The notes: generated from the sequence alone by a model not told the origin. 64,000 nucleotides of DNA from Setoptus koraiensis (GCA_048013815.1 CM106585.1:2976001-3040000); one strand, 5' to 3'. Shown: positions 22,646-60,745, counted from the first letter of the stretch. Program-made: numbers and translations.

Positions 22646-23145
22646 NNNNNNNNNNNNNNNNNNNNNNNNNNNNNNNNNNNNNNNNNNNNNNNNNNNNNNN
22701 NNNNNNNNNNNNNNNNNNNNNNNNNNNNNNNNNNNNNNNNNNNNNNNNNNNNNNNNNNNNNNNNNNNNNNNNNNNNNNNNNNNNNNNNNNNNNNNNNNNN
22801 NNNNNNNNNNNNNNNNNNNNNNNNNNNNNNNNNNNNNNNNNNNNNNNNNNNNNNNNNNNNNNNNNNNNNNNNNNNNNNNNNNNNNNNNNNNNNNNNNNNN
22901 NNNNNNNNNNNNNNNNNNNNNNNNNNNNNNNNNNNNNNNNNNNNNNNNNNNNNNNNNNNNNNNNNNNNNNNNNNNNNNNNNNNNNNNNNNNNNNNNNNNN
23001 NNNNNNNNNNNNNNNNNNNNNNNNNNNNNNNNNNNNNNNNNNNNNNNNNNNNNNNNNNNNNNNNNNNNNNNNNNNNNNNNNNNNNNNNNNNNNNNNNNNN
23101 NNNNNNNNNNNNNNNNNNNNNNNNNNNNNNNNNNNNNNNNNNNNN
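22646..23145. other. Assembly gap (500 N)
   Basis: Exactly 500 N, a fixed-size placeholder. ORF-track entries spanning it are artefacts. Confidence 0.99.
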
Positions 23146-40122: not shown

Positions 40123-43100
40123 ATGTTCAGTAATATGTGCGAACATTCAAACGGTAAGTAGACACTTTCACTTCTAACTCAAGTCAGTCAAAATTGATTG
40201 ATACTCACTCAAATTTCACGAAAGATACATCCGCATTCACCAGTACATGTAAATCGGGCATGCTGATGCACGAGTTGTCTCACGAAGGCTCTGACAATCA
40301 TGTCACACGAAACACAACGAAAAATGCTTTGAAAATCCGATACGAAAAATCCCGATATGTACCCGGCATAACCCATATGCAAACATGCCCGCGCGATGCA
40401 CGTGAACAAGCCGTGAGAGCAAAGAGTTGTATCACCTCCCTTCAACTAATGCATCAACCATATAAACATGAAGAACATCATCAGGTGACTCAATCACTCT
40501 TGAGTCGTTAATTAGCGTTGCTTCATGACGTAACTAGAATCAAAAATAACAAAATAACTCAACTGTTTACTTTCTTATTTTGTACATTTTATATTAACAT
40601 TATATTGTTGTAAAAATCCGCATTCCATCCTAATCATATAACAAAATGATCTCCAGGGTGGCGGCCAGAAGATGGCGTCCCCGATCTGGCTATGATGAGC
40701 GATATCACCGGCGACGGAATCAATGTCAATCTGAGGACTCGCTACAAGAGAAATCAAATATATACATTTGCTGGCTCTATACTCACCGCTGTAAATCCAT
40801 ACAAACAATTAGATATTTACAATGCAAAATGGATTGCCAAATACCGAGCACAAAAACTCGATCATACGGAACCACACATTTTCGCTATGGCAGAGGCCAT
40901 GTATATGAATTTGATTATGCAATTGGACGAAAAACTTTCATTAAATCAAGCGTGCGTTATATCAGGAGAGAGTGGTGCCGGCAAAACTGAAACTACCAAA
41001 TTCATCCTATCCTACTTGTGTGCCGTTACACCAAATAAGTCATCTTGGATGGAACATCAAATATTAGAGGCAAATACTATATTAGAGGCGTTCGGAAATG
41101 CAAAAACTATTAGAAATGATAATAGCAGCAGATTTGGTAAATTTATTCAAGTTTGTTTTGATGGACATTCGCAGATTAAAGGCTGCATTATTCAAGACTA
41201 TCTTCTGGAACAATCAAGGATTACTTTCCAGTGTAAAGGCGAACGCAACTATCATGTCTTCTATCAATTAATAGCAGCGGCACAAACAAATGATGATCTG
41301 GCGAAAAAGTTTCATTTAAAACAATGCCAATTTTACAATTACTTAAATAATTCAAATTGTTACACTATTGATGGTGTCGACGATTGCTCAATGTATGACT
41401 CACTCCGGCTTGCCATGTCAGTTCTTGGAGTGCCTCAAGATAATTGTGATGGAATATTCAGTGTACTAAGCGCAATATTGTTACTCGGCAATCTTGAATT
41501 TGATGATACAGAGACCGACGGAGAGATCTGCAAACTTACTGCAAAAGATAATGAGATAATTGACATTGTAGCCGAGTTGTTATCTGTTGAACGTGGACGG
41601 CTTGAAAAACTTACCTTGAGTAGAGAGATCAACGTTAGAGGCACTGTAACTGCCATTCCATTCAAAGTGAGCGAGGCACGTGATAATCGAAATGGTATGG
41701 CCAAGGCTCTGTATTCAAAAACTTTCGCTTGGATTGTGAATTTCATCAATGCTTCCACAAATCCCGGCAACGATCGCGACCGTTTCTTGGGGGTTCTGGA
41801 TATCTTTGGATTTGAAAATTTCGAAACTAATAGCTTCGAGCAATTATGTATCAATTATGCCAATGAAAAACTGCACCGATTCTTCAATCATCACATGTTT
41901 GCACTCGAGCAAGAACTGTATAAACAGGAAGGTATTGAATTTTGTGATATTAACTATACCGACAACACTAAATGTTTAGAATTGTTGGAAAAACCACCGA
42001 AATGTATACTACGTCTCCTAAGCGAAGAATGCCGAATGCCCGGAGGAAGTGATCAATCGTTTGTCAGTAAATTGCATCAAGAGTTCGGCGGTAATCAAGA
42101 ATCAAGCTCGTCTCACCCATATTATATTCGAGGAGATGACAGGAGAAAGTGGTCCAAAGAATTCTCTGTGAAACATTTTGCCGGTCCTGTGACATATAAT
42201 GTGGAAGGCTTTTTGCAAAAGAATAAAGATGTTCACCAAAGCCAGCTATTTGAGGTTATTGAGAACTCATCGAACCATCATCTTCGCGATTTGGCTAAAT
42301 GTCAGTGGTATTGGAGCGACAGCATCACACTAGTCAATTTTAAGAATCAGAATGGTGCTGCTTCCTTAGCTTCAAGTGATTCAGTATCATCTGGATTGTC
42401 GCAATATTCTAACAGCTTAAGTAGAAAAAATACTCGAACAGATTCACTTGATGAAGATAAAAACCAAAATGTCATTCGTGAAAAACCAAAGCTACGAACT
42501 CAACTGTCATTAAATTCCAATCAGCAATCATCTAGCAATAGTTCTGGAGGAATCTCAATAATACAACAGAGACGAGAATCTCTAACCTCAAATTCGATAT
42601 ACGGTTCTACATGTTCTAATAGCCAACAACACAGTCAGTCTAATAAATCAAAACCCATGGTAGCTGATGCATTCCGATATCAATTATCAGCACTCGTTGA
42701 ATTGTTGAATTCCGCCAATCCATGGTATGTTCGGTGCATAAAACCAAATCTGGATAAATCGGCAGAAGATTATGACGACAAGCAAGTTCTATTACAACTC
42801 AAATATTTGGGTATGACAGATCTGATCAAAATTAGACGTGAAGGTTTTCCAGTTCACTTCACCAAGCACCAATTTGTTTGCCGTTATCGCTGCCTCTTAC
42901 TAAAAAAACTTAGACTAGATAGACAATCAAAAGTTGGAGATACTAAAAATGACTGGGAGCTTAGTTTAGACGAAGAGAAATTGGATGTTACTTGCAAGAG
43001 AATGTTCGATTTGCTAGAATTGAATACAGGCGATTGGAAAATTGGAAAGACTATGGTGTTTTTACGTGATAGCATCCACCAGCCAATGGAAGAGAAAAGA

Positions 43101-45145
43101 AAACTACTTTTTATGAGGCAAGCGACCATCATTCAGGCCAAGTGGCGATCATTCAGAGTCCGAAAAAACTTCATACAAATGCGGCGTGCTGCGATGAAGA
43201 TACAGGAAGCTTTCTTGGCCTTCCGAGGTAGACTGGATTACCTAAGAAAAAAAAGAGCTGCAATAACAATTCAGGCATTTGTACGAGGTATGTTTGCTAG
43301 GGAGATAGCCGGTGCTTTACGAGAAATCAAAAGAGTCGAAGCAGATGCTCTCAGGAAACGTGCGGCAGAACTTGAAAGAAAAAGGCTTCTTGAACGTGAA
43401 AAAGAGTTAGAAATTGAATCTAATCATAAACAAGAAGCACTCATGAATCTTGAAAAGAAACAAGAGTTGTGTAATAATTCAAGTGAGAAAAATTCGGAAA
43501 CTAATTTGGAGACAGAAGATGAAGATACTTCTGCTGAAAATAACCAGGCAAACTATGATGGACGGGGATCATCGGAGCGTTGTTATGAAACCGAGACCGA
43601 TTCTGGAGATAATGATTCTATCCATCGCTCGCATTCCGAGGCCTCCTCTATCATTACTGAGGATGCGGATCCGAAGACAATGCATCCCTCTCTGGGTAGT
43701 ACGAGCAATGAACGATCTGCTCCACTCATAGACGTTGCAGAGGACAAGAATCTCAGGGATAAGCAAGAGATGGATGAGCTAATGCAACTGCTGGAAAAAC
43801 ACGGTATCTCAGTGAATCCGGAAGGTACGAACAACGATTTGTACTCTGATTTCAAAAAGTTGTATGATCTTCTCAACAGTAAATTACAAGCGAAGCAAGA
43901 TGCCCAATCAATCACTTCATCACTCAATGAGGATGATAGATATAGTTACACTAATAGCAATATTGGAGATGGCGACAACGTAAGTCACTCAGATCATAGT
44001 CAGATATCATCGACTATGGCAGAATCAGACATTACACAAACATCAACTCCAGCAGAGGACAACAACAACAATTCAATAATTAATTCCCAGGATGGAACGG
44101 AGAGCGATTCTACTAAAGGCACTGATACTATGAATCATAACTACGAAGTTTTGCAGACAAACGATCGTTGTAACTCAATGGAATCTATACCCTCTATCGC
44201 TAGTACGTCATCATCATTGTTATCCCAGCAGCCATCTAATTTGAACGGTGACAATATTAGCCATAGGCTAGATTCATTCAGACAGAATCAGCGACAAGAT
44301 TGTTCAGAACAACATAATCTAACAAAAAACTATCATATACCTCAAGAACAATTAGCATATAGCCACAATTATGCTATGCACAGTCAACGTCACGAAAAAA
44401 CTGCAGGGATTCTGACTAGAATTGAGGAGGAACCTAGCTCAAGTACAGCAACTACACCCTCCAAAACGCCATTAAAAAGACCTGTCAACTTAGCTAATCA
44501 TATATTATCGGAAATTCATCCATCTATCGAGGATCAACCCGGACAATTTTCACAGTCTGCCGAAATTAAGAGGAGGCGATTTGAGAGACGCACTTACTCT
44601 CAGGTGCAACAGCTACAGCAGCAACAACAAATTCAACAACAGAAAGCTTCCAATTTCGTTAATAATAATCAACCAGTGATGTCTCAGTATAGATCCACCA
44701 ACCAACAAAACGATTGCTCAGAACAAAAGGTATATGATCATTGTTATGGAAAACTCAATAGTGATGCTATTTACGAAACGAAAAAATGCAATATGATTGA
44801 ATTCGCTGAAAAAGTTTTTAACGACCATCCCAAAGATCAATCCACCGGTGGCATGATTCGCACTTTGACGAGAAGAAGAAAAAGTAATGATTCTGCTCCA
44901 GTGGAATGTTTGACGAAACGAGAGATGCTCACGTACACATCTAGTCCCTCAATCACAACCTCTCACATTAAGATGCATGATCCTCACAATGCACAATTGA
45001 GTTGCTCCATGTTCAAAAACCTACGGAAGTATATGACCGGAGAGGGTTTAAAACTGGAGATGGAAGTGCGAATCATCCAGTCTATGATCAGAAATGGCAT
45101 TGAGCGCGTGGAACTACGAGACGAAATCTATGTGCAAATTGTCCG
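40123..45145 (+). CDS. Myo22: Unconventional MyTH4-type myosin heavy chain, probably class XXII; exon 40123-40153 plus exon 40657->45145; 3'-truncated by the gap
   Basis: The motor has P-loop GESGAGKTE, switch I NDNSSRFGKF, switch II DIFGFE and YVRCIKPN. Then come three IQ motifs (IQAKWRSF, IQEAFLAF, IQAFVRGM), a charged helix, a long low-complexity tail and the start of MyTH4 (MIEFAEKVFN...HIKMHDP...ELRDEIYVQIV). A micro-exon MFSNMCEHSNG with donor gtaagt at 40154 splices in frame to ctccag|GG TGG CGG at 40657. The class call is from recalled similarity only. Confidence 0.9.
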
Positions 45146-45645
45146 NNNNNNNNNNNNNNNNNNNNNNNNNNNNNNNNNNNNNNNNNNNNNNNNNNNNNNN
45201 NNNNNNNNNNNNNNNNNNNNNNNNNNNNNNNNNNNNNNNNNNNNNNNNNNNNNNNNNNNNNNNNNNNNNNNNNNNNNNNNNNNNNNNNNNNNNNNNNNNN
45301 NNNNNNNNNNNNNNNNNNNNNNNNNNNNNNNNNNNNNNNNNNNNNNNNNNNNNNNNNNNNNNNNNNNNNNNNNNNNNNNNNNNNNNNNNNNNNNNNNNNN
45401 NNNNNNNNNNNNNNNNNNNNNNNNNNNNNNNNNNNNNNNNNNNNNNNNNNNNNNNNNNNNNNNNNNNNNNNNNNNNNNNNNNNNNNNNNNNNNNNNNNNN
45501 NNNNNNNNNNNNNNNNNNNNNNNNNNNNNNNNNNNNNNNNNNNNNNNNNNNNNNNNNNNNNNNNNNNNNNNNNNNNNNNNNNNNNNNNNNNNNNNNNNNN
45601 NNNNNNNNNNNNNNNNNNNNNNNNNNNNNNNNNNNNNNNNNNNNN
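45146..45645. other. Assembly gap (500 N)
   Basis: Exactly 500 N; it interrupts the myosin CDS mid-MyTH4. Confidence 0.99.
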
Positions 45646-48590
45646 AATGATGGACGAGTGCAAAGCTAGATTTATTATTACTAACACATTCAGTGATTAT
45701 ACAGACAGGTAGAGAGTCGTTATGTGCCATGATTGAGTTTAATTAAGGCTGCTTGTGTGTGTAATTACAGGCACACTAATAATAAAAATATTAAATAAAT
45801 AAGAAGTAAAGACACATTAAGACGATCTAGATAATTAGCATGAGTAAAACCAAAATAACTAATAAGAAAGTTGTGCAGTGAGAGAAGAAAGCCATGATGA
45901 CACAATTACCGCCAACAGTCGGTTGCTACTGTTATTTTTTGATGGGCGCTAAATAATCTGAGTCAGAAGCAACAAAAACTGTTCCAATTGAACTGAAGCC
46001 TTTAATATCGACTTTGTTTACGCATAGATTATAGAGTTTAAATCAAACAGGAGATTAACTTCATTGAATAAATAGAAGGACACATAGAGTTGAATACTCA
46101 GCAAGCCGCCAAGACAGTTAATAGAACACCATCATTATCAATTGTTAAGCAACTGTAGGCACATTAGAATTAAATGTGCTCTATGCTAGATCTAATGATA
46201 ATAATAACAATAATAATAATAATAATGCTTCTGCATAGGTTTAGCATATTATAATGATGCAATAATAAAAAAAAATAAATAAATAATCATAATATTATTG
46301 TTAGTTATAAAACAGCGACTAATGATGACTAATGACACACAAAAGTATTGAGGTGAGATGAGTTGTGTGTCTAAGGAAGATTAAGCACACACATATAAAT
46401 ATTTGGTTAATTGACAAGCAAGTAGCAACAGGTAAAATGTTGCTTCTCGCTATCTCACAAGTATCTTGCCGGGCCAATGTAGTCTCGACAAACAAGAATT
46501 GGCAACTAACAGCGGCAAGCTCAAAAGAAGAGCAATTGACTGTTCATTATAAACAAGTGAAGTGAAATGAAGCGTGAACGGGGCCCTTTTTACAATAATA
46601 GTATGCAAATTGTGAATGTGGCTAAAAGAGTTCACTTTAGAAATTTGTTGTTCAACATGTTGTTGTTGTTGTTTGTCAAAAAAGAAAGAGAATTAGGTTG
46701 TTATGTGTTGTTAACAGGAGAGAGAAGAAGAAAAAGAGACTTCCAACTTTTATACATTCCACAAAGTAATAGTGCCATTTCTGTTCAAAAAAGAACCAAT
46801 TCTATCTACAATTTTACAAAAATAACATGTGTACCATGCCATGATACATGTGATGATGACATAATAGTAGATTGTTGCAGATATATATGTTCAAATGTGA
46901 TGGTATCATCTCTTTCTTTCTCATTGGTTGTTCTCTATACTATAGCAAAAATAACATGAATAATATTTTCATTGTGTGACTATCTATTCTGCTGCCATTG
47001 GCTCACTTTTACTAGCAATAGTTACTAGTCAGTATATTAGTAAATATGCTAGTTTATTCAATGGTGGTCATCGGTGGTGCTCTTAATACTCCAACTGCAC
47101 ACACAAGATGTAGTATGAAGTATAAAGCATACAAACTGTATTTGTTCATTTGAGACTACAAATGAATTTGCATCAAACAAATTTAATGCAGAATTGTTTG
47201 CTTTAGTAACATAAATGTTGCGCTAGCTGGCAGGTTGCGCTGTCGTTGGGTGGTTATGTTGATAGAACTATTTGGTTTAATGACCGACCAAACAATAGTT
47301 TTGGCAATTTCGCCAAAATAATTCATTTGAATTATTTACTAATATTTAGTTAGTTGGACTTAACTCTCACCAGACGACAACTACCAGCAAAACGCACACA
47401 CACACACACACACACAATTTACTAAAACTCATTACTAGATATAACTAAAGGATCATGCTGATTATTACGTCATTAATTGAGAGCAGAGATGAACAGGATT
47501 TGTGTCTTGTGCCCCCGCAAACACAAGCACGCACACACTTTACTTGTTGAGAGTTACCACTGTCATTATTAGGAACAGACAGACATTTAATGAAACTACA
47601 AGTTTTTTGTCTATATATGTGTGTGACAATTCCAGCCAGCTCACATTCAACACCTAAATCACAACGAAAGAAAAAACATTGAAAGATATTCAATTCTTAT
47701 TTTTTTGTCACAATGCTTTTGTCTGCTCTCATATGAATGTAACGGTGTTGTTGTCGCTGGTGTTGTGATGTAACTGTAGCAACAAAAAGAATAGAAATGA
47801 ATGAATGAAAAAGACGTCCAACAATGTGTCATCATTATTATAATGAGTTCGAGCAAGAGAGCTTATTGTCATGTTGCTGCTGGCAGTACCATCATGCCAT
47901 GAGTGTGTGTGTGTGGTATCGTTTGCAAACAACAGCAATTCATTACAGGTGAGCTGGGTTTTATCTTTCTCCATGTTACACCTGTATTTGAGCACTTGTA
48001 TGAATTGTAGCCACCATCGTCATCACTGGCACAAGTTATTTGTTGCTGGTTGGTCGCTGGTTGCATAATTCGTGCATGTAACCGCAACTGTAACCATAAT
48101 TGACGACACAACATGGCCATTTTTCACACTTCCTATCATTGTTTCATCTGCTCTGGCTTTTTATTATATTGTTTTAGCTTATGCAACAACAGTTATCATT
48201 GCTAGAGCAATATTAGAGCGCTATTAATACGGCCAGCAGTGTTTAGTTTGGCTTTGAATTTTCGGGATGATCTCACAAAATGTAGTAAAACTTGAAAATG
48301 ATGATATGAAAAAAGAAATTGTTGCCAACAATGCCAGCTGTTGGTTGTACAAGCTGCGTATGTGTGTATGCCAACAACAAAAGAATATAACAAAAAGTGA
48401 TTTGGGTGACTTAAGCCACTTGTTGGTGGCTTAACAACAATTGTCACATTAATACGGCCAAACTTGGCCAGTGCTCGGCATGATTGACAGAAACAAAAAT
48501 GTCAACTAGAAACGGAAACAGCAACAACCAGTTTCGCAACAGCACACACATACATGCAAGATATGAAGAATGTAATGTAGTGAAACTTAC

Positions 48591-49350
48591 CACTATTCCT
48601 TGCAGCATCTATTATAATTGCTAATGGAGTGAACAAGAAATGGACCAGCTCAGGTGCGTTCGGGTCGTGAATGCAACCTTTTAATTTGGCCAACAAATTG
48701 AAGGCCAATTTAAATTTGCATAATATCTCATAGAAATCATCTTCGTTTGGTCCACGAGCTCTGCTGGCCAACAATCCATCGCCTGGCATTCCGTTAGTTG
48801 ATTTTTGTGTTTGACTTGATCTACGCATATTACGTCTAGTTTGCAATTCACGTTGTGCGGCAGCTGCATGTTGCAAGCGCATTATGAATTTCTCAATATC
48901 ATCAAAACAATGATTCAATACAGATACATAGGATTTGGTAGTTTCTGTATCGTTACTTGCAACCTGTTTGTTGTTGTTGTTTGTTTGTGTCGGTGTGTGT
49001 CCATTTGTAGTGCCAAGTGTTGATTGTCCAGCAGTTTGTAGCGAAAATTCAATTCAAACAAAACCATCAATCATTTTATCATTTCCAGTTTCATTTTTGT
49101 CAGTTTTTTTTTTCAATTTTATCATTTTTTGTTAATTTCATGTTTCAGTGTGTGTTATTATATGCATCAATCAAAATGATTTTGTATTTTGTTTTTTGAT
49201 TGAATAAGAAATGTAAGAGAAGGAGAAGAAAACAGTTTTATTTTGTCAGTAAATTTTGCTTGATTATAGCTCAACAAATGGCAACGATGATCGTCGATTG
49301 ATTATTGTTTGCTGCTAACAGCGCAACTACGACTACGCTTTCTGTCTATA

Positions 49351-49383
<33 letters not shown>

Positions 49384-52300
49384 AACATTATGTAGGCAAC
49401 ATATGCTTGTCAAACACATAATGTATCGAGTAGGATGTAATTAATCATTTAATTAGTGCAAAAAGTCAGTTTAGAGGGAGAGAGCAAGAAAGTAACGGCC
49501 GGTTGTCCTGATAACGGCGCTTGTCGATATCGATTGATTCATCATCACCGTTAGATTCGAAAAGACGACGACAGAGCGAGAGAGAAACTAGAAACTCAAG
49601 AAACGATATTCAACAACTGGGCATAAATCCGTGAATGGTCAAACTCAAAGTTGAATCCCAGCTAGAGACTCCCTAGTAGAGAGAGAGAGAGAACGGGTTT
49701 CTCGATGATGGCCATTTTAGATGATTATGATTGCGCGATTACGTTTACGATGATGATGATGACGATGATTAGAAGTGAGGCAAGCCGGATAGCAGCACAA
49801 GTTGTGTGAGTTTGCAAAGCTAACGGAATCATTTAATCTGATTCCGTTCACTCGTTGTGCGTTGTACTTGTTCTTTCCACTGTTCTCTATAATGTGTTAT
49901 ATGAAAAAGAAGGTAATGACTAAAACCTGACTTTTAATCATTAGTTACCTAATGTTCACCGATTCTAATGCACATCTATTGATACATGCATTAGTATTCA
50001 TGCAAACACTGGCCAAGTGGACGCAGGCGAATGTAAATGGTTCTATTGGTTCTCTCTCTCTCTCTCTCTCTGGTCAACAGCAATGGCTACCCATTGATTG
50101 CATGTTGATTGCTGATCGTTGTTTAATTGAACTCGCAATAAAAGTGATTAGAAAACAAACAAAACTATCGAGCAATTGTTTGGCAAAGAGAGAAATAAAA
50201 GATCAGAAATGGAGGCCAGAGAAGGAATAATTTGCACTTGTATACGATGATGATTCTGGCGAGTAATAATAACAAAGAAATGATCTGATTTATGTGTTCG
50301 TATATAGAGGATGAACCAACTCGAGTATTCATTGTTATTAGATAATCCGCTCTCCTAACCCATTGTTTGCCATGGCAGTTGTTAGTCAGAGATCGAACAG
50401 ATCACACATCTTGGGCTCATTCTCGCACTTCTTCTTATTTGGTGTTTGTATTGGACATTATGTAATTTCTATCTGTTGATCATTGGCCGATACGTTAGGT
50501 GACCCCGCGATTACGATGAACTTGACCATAACTAGTGATACTACTACCTGAAGACATTACACCACATGGCTATCGCAGTTATAGGTCATCATGTATAGTT
50601 GTATCCAGTGGGCAACCTTACATTGTGTCTACACGTACTGATCACTGACTTGTGAGTTCATCAGTGAATTGTTTTTGTTAAAAATTATTCACAACAACAC
50701 ATTACGTCACAAACGCAACGACTGGTTGATTTGTATTTGTGCAACTCATTCATTGGTCAGTCAATAAGCAAGATCGTAACTAATCAATTAAGCATCGCAC
50801 AAACAAAAGAGAATTATATTAATTTTAATTCAATCTGTGCTTTCTAGCCACATGTTGTTCTAATCATGGCCACTGTTAGATAATAGTAGACGCAATTTGT
50901 TTATTGATACGCAACAAATCAAGCAAAAATCTAGTAAGAGACACAAACAGGATAAGAAAGAAAGAGTTCAAGTCCAAACCTTATACATCAGATCAGCATA
51001 AGTAAGGTTACATTTGCATAGCAAATTGGCAACCAACAACAATCGACACTTGTCCAACTTTTGCTTTTCATACTAACTTAACATTCAGTGGCTAGTTTTC
51101 TTAGTTCTACACTATACACTGTCCAAGAGATTGGTCATCCTAGCAAATACTTTTTGTTGTCTATTTCTACCTTAACAACAACGATCAGTATACGATTTCA
51201 TTCGAATGATAAAATGAAATCTTACATAAACTTGGATGAATGGTGCAACTGCACACCCCATTGATAAACTGAATATGGGCGAGCTAATGACAAAAGGTGC
51301 CTCAAAAAGAGAAAAATCCTGATTGATTCAGCGCAGTACTAGTCAATGTGTTTACTATACGATTTACTATCATACCATTGATTGGAAACAAAGACACAAT
51401 TATTATAATTAGTATGATTGTATTGTAATATTGAAACAGCAAGAGCTTTGCTAATTAGTCAATTATGATCATCATTGTTGTCTTAGAGAATAGTTTTTGT
51501 GCGTTCGAATAGTCTGATGTGATATGCATCAGACATAAATGACGACACATAATGTCAACGATCGAAAAATGTTTGCACTTGCAGCAATTTGCAACTTTCA
51601 ACCTTTATTAAGGCTCTATAACACCTGCTGTAGATCAAATAAACTTAATCACTCTTTTGTTTGTTTGTTTATTCGCTAGATCATTTGTTGAATTCATAGT
51701 AAATTATTAGTTGTCAATCGGTTAGCTACTGCAATAGAAACATAAATTAGAGATCAAGGAAAGTCAATATGTAACTTGTGATATCATTGACATAATAAAT
51801 ACAATGCTCTTATGAAAAAAGTGTGCAAACAATTAAAAGACGTCACATTACTATTAGTAAGTAATTAGTGTTGAAACAAAAAAAAGCTGACACGCTACAT
51901 AGCAGCGTGACATAAGATGATGAAAATGATGATCTCTATAGAATATCTATCGATGAGGAAAAGAAGACAATCGAAAGTAGTAATAATGGCAGTAGATAAT
52001 GTAAACATTTGCTCTAGAATATGAATATGTAAAATATTTCAGTATCCCTCATTGGCATTAATTAATGATAATAATGGGAGCAAACTAGTATAAAGGAGAA
52101 ACTTGAGACAAGAGAATGATTAATTGACAATAATCAATCAATGAGTATCAATTGAGCACCCATTTTGGTCAGCTTCATTCACTAAGGTATATTGGATAAT
52201 AAATAAGGCACAATGGTTAGTAGTTTATATACATACAAACTTACAAGCAAGCCAGAAGCTTCAATACCACTGACTTGCCGATGGGCACAATCAACACACT

Positions 52301-55300
52301 ATGCATATCGGAGTTATTGTTGTTTGATATGACAAATAATGAGATAGCATGACAATATCTATGCCATGCCGCCTTTGGTGTTGTTGACCATTAATTGACA
52401 ATCGACAGCAAAGTATTTGTCAAGATATCAGTTTTCGCGCCGACTTAACTTAATGAGAATTCAACAAATCATAAAATTCTAATCAAAATCTGTCGTTTGT
52501 TTATCTCTCTACTATTTTCATTAAACAAAAGACTTCGACAAGGAGACTGGTCACTGTCTATTTGGCGATATCAATGGTGTCATTAGTCATAACAATAGCA
52601 AATGGCCAACGAGGCGGTTGGGGACACGGTGGTCGAAGACACGATAATAATCACAATGACGATCATCACGATGACCACCACGATGACAACCACGATGACC
52701 ATCACGACGATCATCATGACGATAATAATGACGATAATGATGATAATGGTACAGATATACACATTCATGCTCATAAAGGTGATCATGTTCATTTAACAAT
52801 TGACAACGACGATGACGACGACGACGATGATAATGATGATGATCCAGGTGATGATGATGATCCAGGTGATGATGATGATCCAGGTGATGATGATGATCCT
52901 GGTGATGATGATGATGATGATGATGATGACAATGATAACCATCGTCGTCGTCGTCATCGTAGAAGACAGACTATACATATAGATATTGATCATGACGACG
53001 ATCACCACGAAGAACATCATGAGGAACATCATGAAGAAGAGCATCATGAAGAGGAGCATCATGAAGAACATCATGAGGAAGAGCACCACGAAGAACACCA
53101 CGAAGAACACCACGAAGAACAACATCACGATGATAATCATAATAACAATAACAACAATAACAACAATCACCCCAATTGGCCACCTCCGCCGCCTGGACCA
53201 TGGGGACATCCACCAGGAGGAAATGGAGGAAATCACGGCCGTTAAAACATTGATCAATTGTTAGTTAATTGTTTGTCATTTATGCTAATTAATTAGTTCA
53301 GTCGTTAGTACATTGACTCTATGATCCAATAGAATGACGAATGTTTGTCGATTATAAACTGTTATACAAGTTGAACATTAGACTAGAGTAAATTAATAAT
53401 AGAAAAAGTCTCGTGTTAGCCAGCCAATCAAATGAGACTTTAGGCAACAGAACAGTTACAAGCAAAACAATAATTGTTCTACTTTTTTATATTTAACCCG
53501 ACCTATTTCGCAATTTTATAAATTCTAGATCCAAACTTCGAATTATTTATACTTTCGCTATAAAAAAAATATTCGTGATAAGAATATTGTTGTCATAAAT
53601 CAAACAGATAGATAATTCCTAATTCAGAGAGGTGATGACGAATCAATTGTTGTCCTTATAGACTAATGTTTGCATCGAACGGTCATCCAAAATTGACGAC
53701 ATTAATGTTGCATTCATTTTGATAAATGAATGTTGTTAGAATGCAAATGTCAATGTCAAATACGAGCCAGATGAAATGGCACAATCAATGTAAACAATGT
53801 TATATTGTATAATCGTATATATTTTGTATTCTTGTATCTGGCTGAATTGAGATAATTCAGGTAGTAAGAATCTTAACGCTTCTCGACATTACGAAAGAGG
53901 CAATATTTCCACTAAGTGAAAGTGAGAATAAGTTGAGCGCAATCTATATTCTACCTAACTGAAACGTGAGGTAGAAAACGTTCATTCATAAATGGCAATT
54001 ATTTGTTTGTTTCTGAATTACAATATTTAGTCTTGTAGATATAGCATCGTCTTACAGCATCGTAAGCTCTTGCGTAAAATCTTGTAACACAAATGAGACA
54101 AACGTCAATTTCTGGTTAACGGTTAAAACGGCGTTGATTGTGATGGTCATCAGACACGAAAACAATAGTCATCAAAATGATGATTGCGGCTCTCACCAGC
54201 CATCATGCAAAAGACAGTGTCTGTTTTAGTAAAAGCAAGATTAAATTACAGTTTAGTTGTATTTCTCACTCTGGCACTGATTGAAATCTAGTGCTGAGAG
54301 CCATCAGTGACTATCAATTGCAAAAAGGAAATCGTTGCTCTGAGTTAATTGCTGCACATCTCTGATAACTGACAATAATAAAAAAGCTCTCACTAATACA
54401 ATCCAATCTATACGATGTATGGAAGCAACATCGATAAAGAAGGTGATCGTCATCTTCCATTGGTGATGTTGATTCAAGTAATTATCATAGGCAAAAGAAA
54501 GGGGTTCTTCTTTCTTTTTTATCATTTATTTTATGACTACTATCATTATAGTGAAATGCATAAGATGAAATGAAACACTTTCGCCGTTTTTTAGTTCTTA
54601 CTGTAATATATTACAGTAATCGCTTTGGCTATAATAATAAATTTAGATTCAATCAACTTTTTTGCAGAGTTTATTGTAACGTAACATGAACAAGAAGAGA
54701 GTTAATTCTTCTCTTCTTTTATATAATATATAAATGAATATATATTTTACTTTTAGTGAAACAAGTTTAGTGTTGATTGTTGCACTTGCAGCCAGATTTG
54801 AATTGACATTGATTTGACAAGACAATTCACTACACCTTTTCACTATAATTCAAAGAGAAGTCTCCCTCTCTGTTTCTCTCACACAAACACAATCCACATG
54901 ATAGCTGTGTGATAGGTTGCACCCGATAAGCTCATAGTCACCTGTACATGGATTGTGAGTAAGAAGTTTAAATAAGCGAAACAAATTTTAACAATAACTT
55001 TTTGTTGGGGTCGCTCTTTTTGTTCATGCATGCTCTTGTTCAATGTTTGTGGTTCACAATGTTAGTTAGTGTACATGTTGATCATTGAATCATTTAAAAA
55101 AGAATGATGATTTCATTTCATCTTAGTTCGTTTCGATTCAGTTCATTTCATTGAGATCGGATTAAACAGTTTGTTTGACGAGTTTACTTATTACTAACAT
55201 GTAACCAGCGAGAGCTATTCGATTCTATTTATGCATACATTTAAACAACAGGTTGATTTTAAACATGAGATAGGTTGAGAACACATATATTCGTATTCGA

Positions 55301-58300
55301 ACAAGCACAGTTGCTAGCTCAACAACAAAAAGAATACACGTTAGTGTTACAACAAAAATCAAATTTGTGTTCGTTCGGATACTTTCAATATCTGGCAAAT
55401 TGCGCCATATAGCGCGAGTGAATGCATTAAATAAATTGTTCAAAATTCATAATCATCCGGCAATAACAATTTATTGGCAGATGTATTCACTTAGATAATA
55501 TTATGAGGTCATAGAGACGTCAATGTTTTACATTTTAGATAGTCTTCAACAACACGAAGCCATGCTGTTCAGTTTAGAAGGCAACATTTTCAACAATCAG
55601 CAACTGGTTTATTGCAACCATTGTGTCCGTTGACCAGCCGACAAGTTGTTGCAATTTGATTATCATGACAACAAAAACGAAGCAAGAAAACTTGAAAGAA
55701 GAACAAATTATAATTCTTTAAATAGACGAGCCAACAAGCGAGAAAAGAATTCAAACAATATGGCTAATTAGTCGATGATAATTATTAAGTACATACCTGG
55801 TCGGCCATAAAATCTGCTTGCGTAACAGACTGTGGTGATAAACTTCTGCGCGTCGGTCTACTAATAGAAGCTTTCTTAGCACCGTTATTTTCAATAGTTG
55901 CACTAAGATGTGGCATTTGGTGCCGGACATTGATATTTCTGTGATGCTGTTGTTGTTGTGGAATCATTTCTATTGGCATAGCACTAACTTGTGAATTGTG
56001 TTTATGATGATGATGGTGCTGTTGTCGTTGTTGTTGCCCATTAACGGAATTAGCTTGATGATGATGATTGTGTTGTTTGTTGTTTACTGGCATATTGGTA
56101 GCGCTTAGTTGCTGATTGTTGTTGCTAACGGCACCTGTTATGGGCGCCAATAATGCCGAATCGTTAGAGCTATTAGTTATAATGGACGATCGTGAATCAA
56201 GATGATGATCTAAGACAGCGCGAGTGCCATATGGAATTGTTGGCATTTGTTGTTGCTGTTTATTATTGGTGCTGTTATTAGCTGATGATGAGCTAGTTAT
56301 TGGTGATGTTGGGGAGACAGCATGTTGCTGTATTAGTGACTGTTCTGTTGTTTGTTGGCCATTATTATCAGTATTACTATTATTATAGTTAGTTGGAGAT
56401 GCTTGACTACTACGACCACTATTACTACTACTTCTATTACTACTTGGCGTTATTTGCTGTGACGCAACCACATTTGGCCTAGTTGAAGGTTGCACAGTTG
56501 TGGGTGATGTGGGTTTCCTGTTAGTATTGTTATTAGTTCAAGAAGAGAAATAATCGATTAGAATAAAGTCAATAAAAATCGTCGTAGTATTTGTAGAGTC
56601 TTGTTGAGGCCATTCGAAAATACATTAGAGAAAAAAAGCAAGTTATTTTTGCTTGTTTTTGTGTAAAAAAAATATTCTCTTTCTTTGGATGCCAAATCGA
56701 GCACAAAACAATAGAACATTTTGATCATTCTAATACAAAAATCCTACATTTTAACTTATATTGAGCTTATTGACAATAATTCCCATCTAATACTATAATT
56801 AATACTGTAACTGAATCAAATTATTATCCATCCCATAGGGAGTATCTCCGATGATGAGCTTCTTTTCGACACCAGTCTAGCAATAATGCAGATGTGACCA
56901 TGCATCATTAAAAGTCACTACATTATTATTCGAATTTTTATTTATTGCAACTTGCAAATCAAATTCAATCAACAACATTGAACAATTCAACAATAATACT
57001 GGTAACAGTGATAGATCACAAATATAAAGAAGCACGCCACAATGAATAAATCCATGGAAGATAAAGCAAAGTTGGTGTGCATGATGTAATTGTTTTATAA
57101 TAATAGCATTGCATGTTTTCAAAATGTTACTAACTCATTATGCTCGATCATTTTTTCAGTTGGTTTCCATCATGGACACACATATAACATATCACATTAA
57201 TAATGAAAGGAAGTAAGTTAATCGGGCCAAACATCAAATGTATGCATTCTATACTGCTAGAGTTGTTACAAGTGTGTGTCGCTTTTTATCTTTTCAGCCG
57301 AGACTGAAATTGATTTGATTTTAGATGTCAGATTGAAATCAATTCGCAATTGTCAGTCAAACAAAATGCATCCTCTCACATTGCCGATCATAATAGAACT
57401 GAACTGATAGACGAACAATCTGATTAATAATCAGGGAATAATAAACATTAGTTCTTTCTATAATGGCTACTATTAATGTAATAGCATATGTAGGCGACAA
57501 CTTGCTGGTAACAATGAATTTCAAACACATCCACTGTAAATACGCAATTTTTACTTTTCATCATATATTACCTCAATGTTACATCAACAACAGCCTATCA
57601 ATGCTTAAAAACCAAGTTTTACAACTTGTTAGTCGACTAACATCGCAGATACAATACCCAATAGTGGCCCAACCTTTCTGATGATTGTGCGATTAAGTGT
57701 GATATATTCAAAGTGGAATCAAATGGCCACCAACAGACTACCACAAACATCATAGAGCACAATTAACAACCGATGTGTTTGCCATCGAATTAGTTTATCA
57801 GCCCACCAGTTTAGTTTATGATCGGATTAGGGTGTCAACACATACGTATTACGACAATTGGCCACAGATATATCAATGTTTATGCTCGCAATTTACTAAT
57901 GAAGCATAATGAGAGACCTTATCGACTAACAAGGCAATCACCATGTGGACACGGTCGTATCGTAAGCGTATATTTCATTTTCGTACATTTGCTCGGCAAT
58001 TCAGAGAACGGGCTTTTTCCTTGAACTAGCATTTCATGGTCGTACATGTACAATCCAATGCTAGAGATACCTTCATTCATCGCTATGAGAGAAAATGTTA
58101 ATTTTCAGGTCTTTTCTTCAGTGTCGCCAATGAGCATATCATAAAAGATGTATTGAAACAATGGCAACATTAAGCGTCGCAATCCACAAGTTTTGAAGGA
58201 TTCGAAGCTTACTCTGGAAAAACTGTCGTCGGAATCGTTGAAACAAATCTAAGACAACAATGACCGCGCTAGTTTTGTTGGTATAGCCGCATTGAAGAAG

Positions 58301-59094
58301 GTCTTTCAAAAGACAGATTTAGCGAATTACCAAAGATATCACTGAATGCTAGAACGAATGGTCAGAATGCAGTCTGTTCTAATTGTTTAGTAACTATCAT
58401 TCAAACAGCTTGTTTAGCATAGACTATCAGACAACATAGTTGATAGACGCTGCTTCCTAATCGAGATACCCCTCTCCTCCGCCTCAAGCTCATCATATGA
58501 AAGCTCCGGATATTTCAGCTCGTCTTTCATCACAGGATCTCACAGCTCACAATTGCCATCTAGACAGCACACAAGTAACGTCTGCCTAAGACATTTAAAC
58601 CCGATTATATGCAGTGAAAGAGGACCTGACCGTCAATTGCATGGCGATATTAATGTTGACAATTTTGTCCCTAGTAACGATCGCTGTTATTATTGATTTA
58701 TTCATCACACATTTAGTTTGTAGTAAACAACTACAAATATTAGTTCCAGGGTTGGACTTGTTCAATTCAAGATTGCCAATCGGGCCAAACCATCACCTGA
58801 ACAGCAAGGCAATAAGTAGGGCCAACAGAATCGGTTATTCATCATTTATTTTTAGTCGGGTAAATACTCTTAAAATTCATATGTGAGCAAACAATACATA
58901 AATGAGTGGTTCAAGAGACTTTTGTTTCCACCGAAATATCGAAATCATGTATATTTTCTGTGAAGTGTACGCCGATGAAACAACCCAGAGCCCTCTCTAT
59001 GTAATTGAAATGTGCTGTTCAGACCGAAAAGAATCATGCCAACTACTTGTTGAATTCTTCTCTTTTTTTCTCATTGATCCTCTCTCTCTCTCTG

Positions 59095-59155
<61 letters not shown>

Positions 59156-60745
59156 ATTGTTTTCTCAATTGAATTGATGTAAGCGTCTTGGCACTTCAAC
59201 TCACAATCCCACTCTACGAATAAACAAACCAACACATAGACATGAGTGACCTCAACTTGAGCAATCATAACAATCCTACTCACAATAATCACAGTTCATA
59301 AATACAGGTAGTTGACAAATATGACATTCCCACGCACGATGTTGCAATGCACGACCAATGTATCTTGAGTAGGTATTATTACCAGTATTATTCGTTGCAC
59401 AATAAGACACCGTCGACATCAGAGTTATTGAGCATCATCTCTCATGCATCGATCGTATACTACATAGTGTTCACTAAATATACCATAGTCGATTGAAATT
59501 TGTGATATTGGATGTTAAAAGTCGCTGCTTCACATCAGTTGTTTTGCAACAAACCAGACATTCGAAAAAATATAGAGACAGAGACAAACTCAATAGAGCT
59601 CGCAATCACTTTGCCACATAAACTGCTAAGTAAACTAGAGCAAAACAACTACAACTCGGTCTATAAAATGTGGCAATCGTGACTTTCATACGAACATCAC
59701 TGGCAACAAATGGTTGAGTTTCTTCTTATGAAGAAAAACTAATGCAAAACCAACTATCAAAGAGATCAACTCACTCGAGTATTAATAGGTGGTCAACTTT
59801 GTGATGCTGTCAAACTATAACAAAAACTTTAGCGATTATTGTCATCGCCTTGCCTTGTCAAATATTTCACTATATATATATGATTCATACGGTCAAGTAC
59901 AGATATAGAATTAATGATGATACTTACGCTTTTTCCCTTTGAGCCGCTATCTGATTGAAAACATTAACTGTCTCCTTAACATTGACATTAACAACAGGTA
60001 TTTTGTTGTTGTTGTTGCTGTTATTTGCTGTTGTCACCGACGATACTGACGACACTTTTGATGATGATGATGATGTGTTATTAACAGAACTAGACTTGTT
60101 GTTGCCGTTGTTAGTTTCTTTATTATTAGATGTTGGCTGTGATTTATCGTCGTTCTTAGTTGAAGACCAATTATTTGAAGCTGAACAAATTGAGCCGTCG
60201 CTAGTAGTATTCTGATCGTTCGTTCTATCTTTATTGAACGATTGTTTTGAGCCACTATTCCAATTTAAAATATCGTCAACAACCTGTTGGGCCTGGTGTG
60301 ATACACATTGAAATATGTGCAATTCGCCAGGACCATTATCACTGGGATTCTGTATTGTGAATAATATAATATTATTATATATATGATTACTGTGATTGAA
60401 TGCACCGGGTTGTTGTATATATGACATGGGAAATCTTTCAACTGTTGATTCTGTCTCGCAATCAACAATCAGCATATAATTGTCTTTTAATTCAATTTGC
60501 ATTCTTTGGGTCCAAATTCCGGATGATTTCTCCAAATCAAATAATCGCTGAAGAGCCAATTTAGGCGTAGTGGCATTAGCATTGTTGTTTGTGGCAGATG
60601 ACAATTCATCATTGTCGGCATTAGTTTCATCGCGATTGTTGCCTGTTGTCGTATCATTTCGATCAAAACTTAACGAAGAACTTTGAGTAGAGAATGTAGC
60701 AAGATGTTCAACATCATAGACTACATTAGACTCACAAGTTGCCAT
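48591..60745 (-). CDS. Eps8: Eps8 / arouser family adaptor; coding exons 60745-59928, 56517-55797, 48963-48591; later exons (SH3, SAM) not found in the window
   Basis: Exon A is an Eps8-type PTB (YDVEHLATF...GIWTQRMQIEL...VERFP...YNNIILFTI...ELHIFQC). Exon C has the signature LNHCFDDIEKF...[32 protein letters not shown]. Splice phases are consistent: GC|gtaagt..taacag|G, CAG|gtatgt..aacag|GTT, G|gtaagt. A UTR acceptor lies at 60759. Confidence 0.92.
52089..52095 (+). promoter_or_regulatory. Candidate TATA box of the nested His-rich gene
   Basis: TATAAAG about 120 nt upstream of the proposed ATG at 52213. Confidence 0.4.
52213..53245 (+). CDS. Secreted His/Asp/Glu-rich repetitive protein, 238 aa, nested antisense in an Eps8 intron; exons 52213-52215 (ATG only) and 52532-53245
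   Basis: cacaATG|gttagt donor and aaacaaaag| acceptor give MTSTRRLVTVYLAISMVSLVITIANG (signal-peptide-like), then QRGGWGHGG. Ordered blocks follow: (HHDDN)n, IHIHAHKGDHVHLTID, (DDDDPG)x4, RRRRHRRR, IHIDID, (HHEE)n, poly-N, WPPPPPGPWGHPP. Synonymous variation between repeats (GAA/GAG, CAT/CAC) preserves the amino acids. Confidence 0.85.
59079..59152 (+). repeat. (TC)n microsatellite with an internal TGATCC duplication
   Basis: Direct reading, inside an Eps8 intron. Confidence 0.95.

Follow-up and report, generated by a model that had tools for sequence, protein, structure and literature searches.

A candidate gene for a secreted, histidine-rich acidic repeat protein lies antisense within an Eps8 intron of Setoptus koraiensis

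Does a long open reading frame (ORF) built largely of short codon repeats, lying inside an intron of another gene and read from the opposite strand, represent a gene in its own right, and if so, what might its product do? This question is raised by a locus in a 64-kb stretch of DNA from Setoptus koraiensis, probably an eriophyoid mite (GCA_048013815.1 CM106585.1:2976001-3040000; the whole stretch is called the window here), where an open exon of 237 codons at 52532-53245 on the plus strand is enclosed by an intron of Eps8, which is encoded on the minus strand. Codon patterns, frame continuity, and a leader sequence recurring elsewhere in the genome make it quite likely, in our judgment, that the locus is a real protein-coding gene. 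As a whole, the reading we prefer has about an even chance of being right: a lineage-restricted gene for a secreted, disordered, His-rich polyanion that binds divalent metals, placed antisense within Eps8.

The translation of the open exon matches, residue for residue, the block architecture given for it in a preliminary description of this DNA, with His-Asp repeats, the alternating segments IHIHAH, HVHLTI, and IHIDID, (DDDDPG)x4, RRRRHRRR, His-Glu repeats, poly-Asn, and a Pro/Gly/Trp tail all present. The exon divides as follows:

52532..52606, plus strand: putative leader (25 codons), with a basic RR, an 18-residue hydrophobic core, and A-N-G followed by Gln
52607..52639, plus strand: QRGGWGHGGRR, the first 11 predicted mature residues, with a W..HG-RR motif common to the probable paralogs described below; G-R-R is a possible dibasic/amidation site
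52640..52747, plus strand: His/Asp/Asn block of HHDD-type units, 12-nt period, with CAT/CAC and GAT/GAC mixed within units
52748..52807, plus strand: non-repeat segment with IHIHAH and HVHLTI, alternating hydrophobic and His residues; an NGT sequon lies just upstream
52808..52942, plus strand: poly-Asp block with (DDDDPG)x4, 18-nt period, 98% matches
52943..52966, plus strand: Arg cluster RRRRHRRR, with two overlapping R-x-[KR]-R convertase-type motifs
52967..52999, plus strand: second alternating segment, translated as QTIHIDIDHDD, with a low-confidence strand at residues 148-150
53000..53140, plus strand: His-Glu block of nine HHEE(E) units, 12/15-nt periods, units differing only synonymously
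53141..53167, plus strand: poly-Asn, 9 codons, AAT/AAC mixed
53168..53245, plus strand: Pro/Gly/Trp tail with a second WGH motif, ending in Gly-Arg and then TAA

Tandem Repeats Finder assigned the periods of 12, 15, and 18 nt. After the predicted cut, the mature protein would comprise 212 residues (~25 kDa) and consist of 28% Asp, 21% His (45 residues), 12% Asn, 10% Glu, and 8.5% Gly, with 81 Asp and Glu residues together and with Tyr, Ser, Cys, Phe, and Met all absent. Its computed pI is 4.5, and its computed net charge is about -65 at pH 7 and about -31 at pH 5.5. AlphaFold2, run without an alignment, gave a mean predicted local distance difference test (pLDDT) score of 52, with a helix at residues 3-25, corresponding to the leader, and two 3-residue strands (86-88 in HVHLTI and 148-150 in IHIDID) paired with each other at low confidence, and nothing else ordered, a prediction that fits an intrinsically disordered protein.

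Several features of the DNA bear on whether this frame is translated. It is the only frame that is fully open throughout, running on from the repeat core through about 55 upstream and about 25 downstream non-repeat codons; with stops making up ~7% of triplets, we estimate the probability of ~80 open non-repeat codons at ~0.003. The only hydrophobic segment of the frame is its N-terminal end. The 45 His codons comprise 25 CAT and 20 CAC with 0 TAY, meaning that the C/T transition is mixed at the third codon position but does not occur at the first (Fisher 1e-7, a value that overstates the significance because repeat amplification makes codon events non-independent). Likewise, differences among the nine HHEE units are limited to the synonymous pairs GAA/GAG and CAT/CAC, and replacements within the His-Asp block are limited to Asn. 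The spacing of repeats in multiples of 3 was not counted as evidence for coding, as it is automatic in trinucleotide arrays. At the DNA level, the only matches to the ORF in its own genome were GAT-type tracts, which are common there (~30 others).

Support from outside the locus comes from two further ORFs in the same genome. All family and homology searches used the protein of the open exon (exon 2 of the gene model) as query, and the own-genome searches cover 48.7 Mb in two contigs. Both the whole protein and its C-terminal 40 residues returned only the candidate gene itself, and the first 40 residues matched the N-terminus of a secreted orphan ORF, L011 (genome-wide E 0.05, 52% identity), which has a tandem copy, L014:

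L011:1486-1944 (G000 contig 2, ~4,968,590-4,969,048): secreted orphan ORF of 153 aa, found in the own-genome search with the first 40 residues
L014:1501-1965 (G000 contig 2, ~4,955,179-4,955,643): secreted orphan ORF, the tandem copy of L011

These two ORFs form an intronless pair 13 kb apart on the other contig, with 74% identity over 153-155 residues, SxE-rich acidic and Trp-rich motifs, four C-terminal Cys, and a Gly-Lys end; the pair has no Pfam family and no match in a word-index protein search. Pairwise BLASTP between the candidate and its putative paralog gave 6e-8, hhalign against the two-copy profile gave 88% probability and E 3e-6 with residues 5-37 placed on 5-37, and the leader scored z 6 against shuffled sequences. 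In a global alignment against shuffles, the rest of the protein reached z 4.1 with L011 and 2.4 with L014, whereas local alignment gave only z 1.7-2.4, and the Cys residues of the paralogs are absent from it. The likeness lies in a leader and first mature residues that align in register (LA..MV.LVIT.A....W..HG.RR), in weak collinear similarity across the acidic middle, and in the Gly plus basic residue with which both types end. Unlike the candidate, L011 and L014 are without the His/Asp/Glu repeat blocks, possess the four C-terminal Cys and the Trp-rich motifs, and carry their ATG in the same exon. We also considered homology with the paralogs in the 5' untranslated region and dropped it, the DNA alignments of both the 5' region and the leader being not significant. 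Searching the genome with a profile built from all three leaders brought up no fourth member. Taken together, an old paralogy with L011 and L014 seems probable. The preliminary description had proposed searching for paralogs and orthologs by the non-repeat motifs; done here, this brought out the two probable paralogs, by way of the leader and W..HGRR, and no ortholog.

Two other observations were made in the course of these own-genome searches. A long (GA)n / (GACA)n simple repeat lies at L011:1000-1060, ~430 nt upstream of the L011 gene. Secreted proteins with His/Glu-rich tails also recur in this genome, as in L016:1555-2430 (G000 contig 2, ~6,112,054-6,112,929), a signal-peptide ORF of 292 aa with a Gln/Asn-rich middle and a His/Glu/Lys-rich C-terminal third. 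We rejected L016 as a relative of the candidate, since no homology was left after composition correction; it has no Pfam family.

How might translation of the exon begin? The gene model upstream of the leader consists of three elements:

52089..52094, plus strand: TATAAA, 124 nt ahead of the proposed ATG and possibly a TATA box
52213..52215, plus strand: proposed first coding exon, a single ATG codon in a good Kozak context (A at -3, G at +4) that runs directly into the donor GTTAGT
52216..52531, plus strand: proposed phase-0 intron of 316 nt, with donor GTTAGT and a pyrimidine-rich 3' end

A TATA-like box, an ATG-only first exon, a hydrophobic leader, and an N-terminal Gln had all been named in the preliminary description, and each is present as a sequence feature at its proposed position, with the splice junction being a prediction. 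The TATA box is a weak point of the model and lends it weak support, as TATAAA occurs 28 times on the plus strand of the window and one this near would be expected by chance in ~5% of cases. The acceptor is better defined: its AG at 52530-31 is the first after a 72-nt AG-free, pyrimidine-rich stretch, for which we calculate a chance of ~0.02 at the window AG frequency of 0.053, and this AG-free zone resembles those of two Eps8 acceptors in the window. Other first exons may be used instead, a notable one being 51812-51856, whose GTAAGT donor is perfect. The one-codon exon is favoured by the paralog alignment, as the resulting leader length and register fit both probable paralogs. The leader itself could serve as a cleavable signal peptide, with a basic n-region ahead of the 18-residue hydrophobic core, an A-N-G before Gln that obeys the -3/-1 rule, and a mean Kyte-Doolittle hydropathy of up to 2.6, as compared with at most -0.2 elsewhere in the protein. 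The core being long, the leader may instead act as a type II signal anchor.

The acidic and basic blocks of the central region are related to each other through a perfect inverted repeat:

52809..52828, plus strand: left arm of a perfect 20-nt inverted repeat, coding for an Asp run
52941..52960, plus strand: right arm of the same repeat, read in frame as (H)RRRRHR

The Arg cluster is encoded by DNA exactly reverse-complementary to a 20-nt portion of the poly-Asp tract, and none of 100 shuffled sequences gave such a pair. Read in frame, the antisense of Asp codons yields Arg and His. Because the arms are exact reverse complements and antisense Asp codons read as Arg and His, a small inverted duplication of the acidic block is the most likely source of the Arg cluster, which would represent a small but concrete case of an oppositely charged block arising in one step. 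In the predicted RNA fold of 52795-52975, the arms pair as a 21-bp stem (-62 kcal/mol, z -5.1).

Beyond its own genome, the protein appears to stand alone. Pfam, NCBIfam, and the PDB sequences yielded no match above noise; with E allowed up to 10, the sole hmmscan hit in Pfam-A was to FAM176, below threshold (E 0.25); the word-index search found no match to the whole protein or to residues 1-40; and exhaustive phmmer against 1.84 billion cluster representatives returned 0 matches at E<=0.001, under a HMMER composition correction that penalises sequences like this one. When L011, the non-repetitive paralog, served as a control query, no match was returned, not even L011 itself, and therefore the proteins of this genome are absent from that database and only cross-species relatives would be detectable there. 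These empty results agree with the preliminary description, which had taken the protein to lie outside any described family, and the candidate, itself a plausible gene, is an orphan with probable distant paralogs in its own genome.

Among known systems, the closest in kind are the H-rich acid salivary proteins of Simulium, for which Zn chelation with an antimicrobial effect, or matrix binding, has been proposed and whose function is unknown (PMC3285218), and the HP/HHH-rich salivary peptides of mosquitoes and midges, which are related arthropod salivary products with His motifs (PMC1790711). The candidate resembles the Simulium proteins as an acidic, low-complexity, lineage-specific arthropod protein with a putative signal peptide and His-containing repeat blocks. 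It differs in that its repeats are of the HHDD, DDDDPG, and HHEE types rather than HG, HPH, HKPED, and QPE, and in that it is known from sequence alone, whereas salivary expression has been shown for the Simulium family; neither the word-index search nor phmmer (1.84 billion representatives, E<=0.001) found a relative.

Outside the arthropods, HRC of the sarcoplasmic reticulum combines a signal sequence, luminal acidic tandem repeats, and a His-rich stretch beside Asp/Glu runs, and binds Ca with low affinity and high capacity as well as Zn. HRC itself is much larger, is a vertebrate protein, and has a Cys-rich C-terminus unlike the candidate, to which no HRC profile matched in Pfam at E up to 10. 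Shell matrix proteins of the Aspein and Asprich type have a signal peptide and long, Ca-binding poly-Asp stretches punctuated by small dipeptides, comparable to the (DDDDPG)x4 of the candidate; they are without His blocks and act in CaCO3 mineralisation, which to our knowledge does not occur in eriophyoid mites, and our searches found no homology to them. By ESM features, the nearest cluster was the Sp185/333 (SpTransformer) family of sea urchins, at a score of 0.77, below the level that parts true from chance matches. Members of this family are secreted and intrinsically disordered with a His-rich region, as predicted for the candidate, but they are Gly-rich with an RGD motif, which the candidate lacks, and neither hidden Markov model (HMM) nor BLAST searches related the two. 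As for arthropod cuticular proteins (R&R chitin_bind_4, CBM14), the candidate showed no such domain in Pfam and no relatives in phmmer. By sequence, the candidate belongs to none of these systems. A lineage-specific, secreted, His-rich acidic repeat protein is a kind already known in arthropods, with the block architecture and the antisense origin proposed for the Arg cluster being new details.

What would such a protein do? In the reading that we prefer, the product would enter the secretory pathway through its leader of ~26 residues and, outside the cell or in a lumen, bind or buffer divalent cations at high capacity; His-His pairs next to carboxylates would hold Zn, Ni, or Cu and the Asp/Glu runs would hold Ca. 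Metal binding by a chain with 45 His and 81 Asp and Glu residues is chemically reasonable. Both charge and metal binding would be expected to shift steeply over pH 5.5-7 as the 45 His titrate (net about -31 to -65), and cleavage at the central Arg cluster, a likely furin-type site, would separate an Asp/His half from a Glu/His half. The suggestion made in the preliminary description that this cluster could be a convertase site is consistent with the two overlapping R-x-[KR]-R motifs (residues 138-144) and the G-R-R at 34-36; the latter comes after nine mature residues and, like the terminal Gly-Arg, may be a further site of processing or amidation. As to origin, the gene would be a highly diverged copy of an L011/L014-type secreted family member in which expanded codon repeats took the place of the Cys and Trp-rich parts, the remodelling having proceeded by in-frame codon-repeat expansion together with a single inverted duplication by which poly-Asp DNA gave rise to the Arg cluster.

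A bolder version of this proposal, which we consider rather unlikely, would make the protein an effector that a plant-feeding eriophyoid mite delivers in its saliva or by another external route, stripping the apoplast or the punctured plant cell of Ca2+ and Zn2+/Cu2+ and thereby damping wound and reactive oxygen species signalling. Its state would switch with pH or metal load between a soluble polyanion and a metal-bridged condensate, and a small Cys-containing secreted protein would have been rebuilt into a block polyelectrolyte by codon slippage and an antisense copy of its own acidic tract.

Several observations weigh against the proposed gene and its function. In four of its six frames, the 176-codon repeat core contains 0, 2, 1, and 1 stops, and because it is open or nearly open in these by composition, the length of the ORF is by itself weak evidence. 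There is no in-frame ATG from the stop at 52472 to Met 52574, and translation begun at this Met would retain no more than 11 residues of the leader; a full leader therefore calls for a tiny coding exon further upstream, and the model hangs on the predicted one-codon exon. The donor proposed for that exon, GTTAGT, has an unusual T at +3, and short upstream ATGs (52117 and 52142) fall in the leader RNA if transcription starts ~30 nt past the TATA box. Similarity to the paralogs is not significant at the DNA level, and no ortholog was found among the proteins searched. Finally, metal binding, cleavage, and site of action are predictions from composition.

Some of these points are shared by the view that there is no gene here, and that intronic simple-sequence DNA (GAT/GAC/CAC/GAA-type trinucleotide arrays) happens to be open beside a chance hydrophobic stretch. 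The near-openness of the core in four of six frames, the ~30 other GAT-type tracts in the genome, an exon without a start codon, the lack of a homolog in searches beyond the genome, and the weakness of TATAAA and poly(A)-like hexamers as signals where DNA is AT-rich all agree with this view. It is a serious rival, yet we find it unlikely: three repeat types, the leader, and the Pro/Gly/Trp tail share one frame, which is also free of stops over ~80 non-repeat codons, C/T changes occur freely at third codon positions and never at first ones, the leader and the motif after it align in register with two secreted ORFs, and the acceptor zone is free of AG. A related possibility is that the locus was a gene and is decaying, that is, that an L011/L014-type paralog lost its in-exon start while its acidic middle grew by slippage and stayed open through recency or composition. 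The paralogs do carry an ATG in the same exon where the candidate has none, and their Cys and Trp-rich parts are gone from it; well-mixed synonymous sites and replacements restricted to Asn nevertheless argue for long-term constraint, and an ATG with donor and a good acceptor are in place upstream, making decay very unlikely in our estimate.

Two further alternatives accept the gene and differ from us on the use of its product. The preliminary description had leaned toward a structural component of stylet or cuticle, and a secreted His-rich protein cross-linked by Zn/Cu could harden stylets, cuticle, eggshell, or spermatophore much as His-metal cross-links harden Nereis jaws and spider fangs. 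His makes up 21% of the mature protein, and its alternating hydrophobic/His segments are predicted as two paired mini-strands, but no chitin-binding or cuticle domain was found in Pfam, Tyr, Ser, and Cys are missing, Gly stays at 8.5% with no Ala-rich or Gly-rich matrix, and an extreme net charge of -65 opposes packing unless fully neutralised, so that a hardening role appears quite unlikely. To the associated idea of self-assembly through Zn-binding beta-sheets, the AlphaFold model with its two short, low-confidence strands lends no more than faint support. Alternatively, the acidic/His blocks might be spacers in a peptide precursor with active ends, one product running from an N-terminal pyroGlu to a Gly-amide cut at G-R-R and another being the C-terminal Pro/Gly/Trp tail, amidated once the final Arg is removed. 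The Gln after the predicted leader cut, G-R-R at 34-36, R-x-R-R at 138-144, and the Gly-Arg C-terminus would all suit such processing, as would the HG-RR at the corresponding position of the paralogs, their Gly-Lys ends, and the WGH found in both end segments of the candidate. These motifs are short and common, though, no known peptide family was matched in Pfam or phmmer searches, and a 45-His spacer with ordered blocks is far more elaborate than usual spacers; we regard a precursor as the least probable of the alternatives considered.

If the candidate gene for a secreted metal-binding polyanion is expressed, it would provide a clean example of the secreted, lineage-specific, His-rich acidic low-complexity proteins of arthropods, which are poorly understood, and one from the eriophyoid mites, a group that manipulates crop plants through secretions of which very little has been characterised. 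Its separated His-Asp, poly-Asp, Arg, and His-Glu blocks would also offer a natural test object for how the patterning of His and carboxylates relates to metal selectivity and pH switching. No major open question is altered by it.

The position of the candidate, described beforehand as nested and antisense in a 6.8-kb Eps8 intron, was borne out by locating the host exons, donor, and acceptor on the minus strand:

48502..60745, minus strand: Eps8 host gene
59924-60745, minus strand: Eps8 exon with the PTB domain
55785-56495, minus strand: Eps8 exon between the PTB and spectrin-like exons, ending in donor GTATGT
48502-48918, minus strand: exon with the EPS8 spectrin-like domain, acceptor near 48964

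The enclosing intron thus runs roughly from 48964 to 55796 (~6.8 kb), with the candidate inside it on the plus strand. No Rfam families were found within this intron, and a transposon origin of the candidate was ruled out, its flanks being single-copy and without terminal repeats. Each of the two Eps8 acceptors inspected (window 48964-49060 and 56520-56620, minus strand) is preceded by an AG-free zone of ~95 nt or more. Elsewhere in the window, an uninterrupted exon of >1,460 codons at 40692-45145 on the plus strand encodes an unconventional myosin (myosin head E 4e-206, with an IQ motif); it continues into a stretch of 500 N at 45146-45645, and a second run of 500 N lies at 22646-23145.

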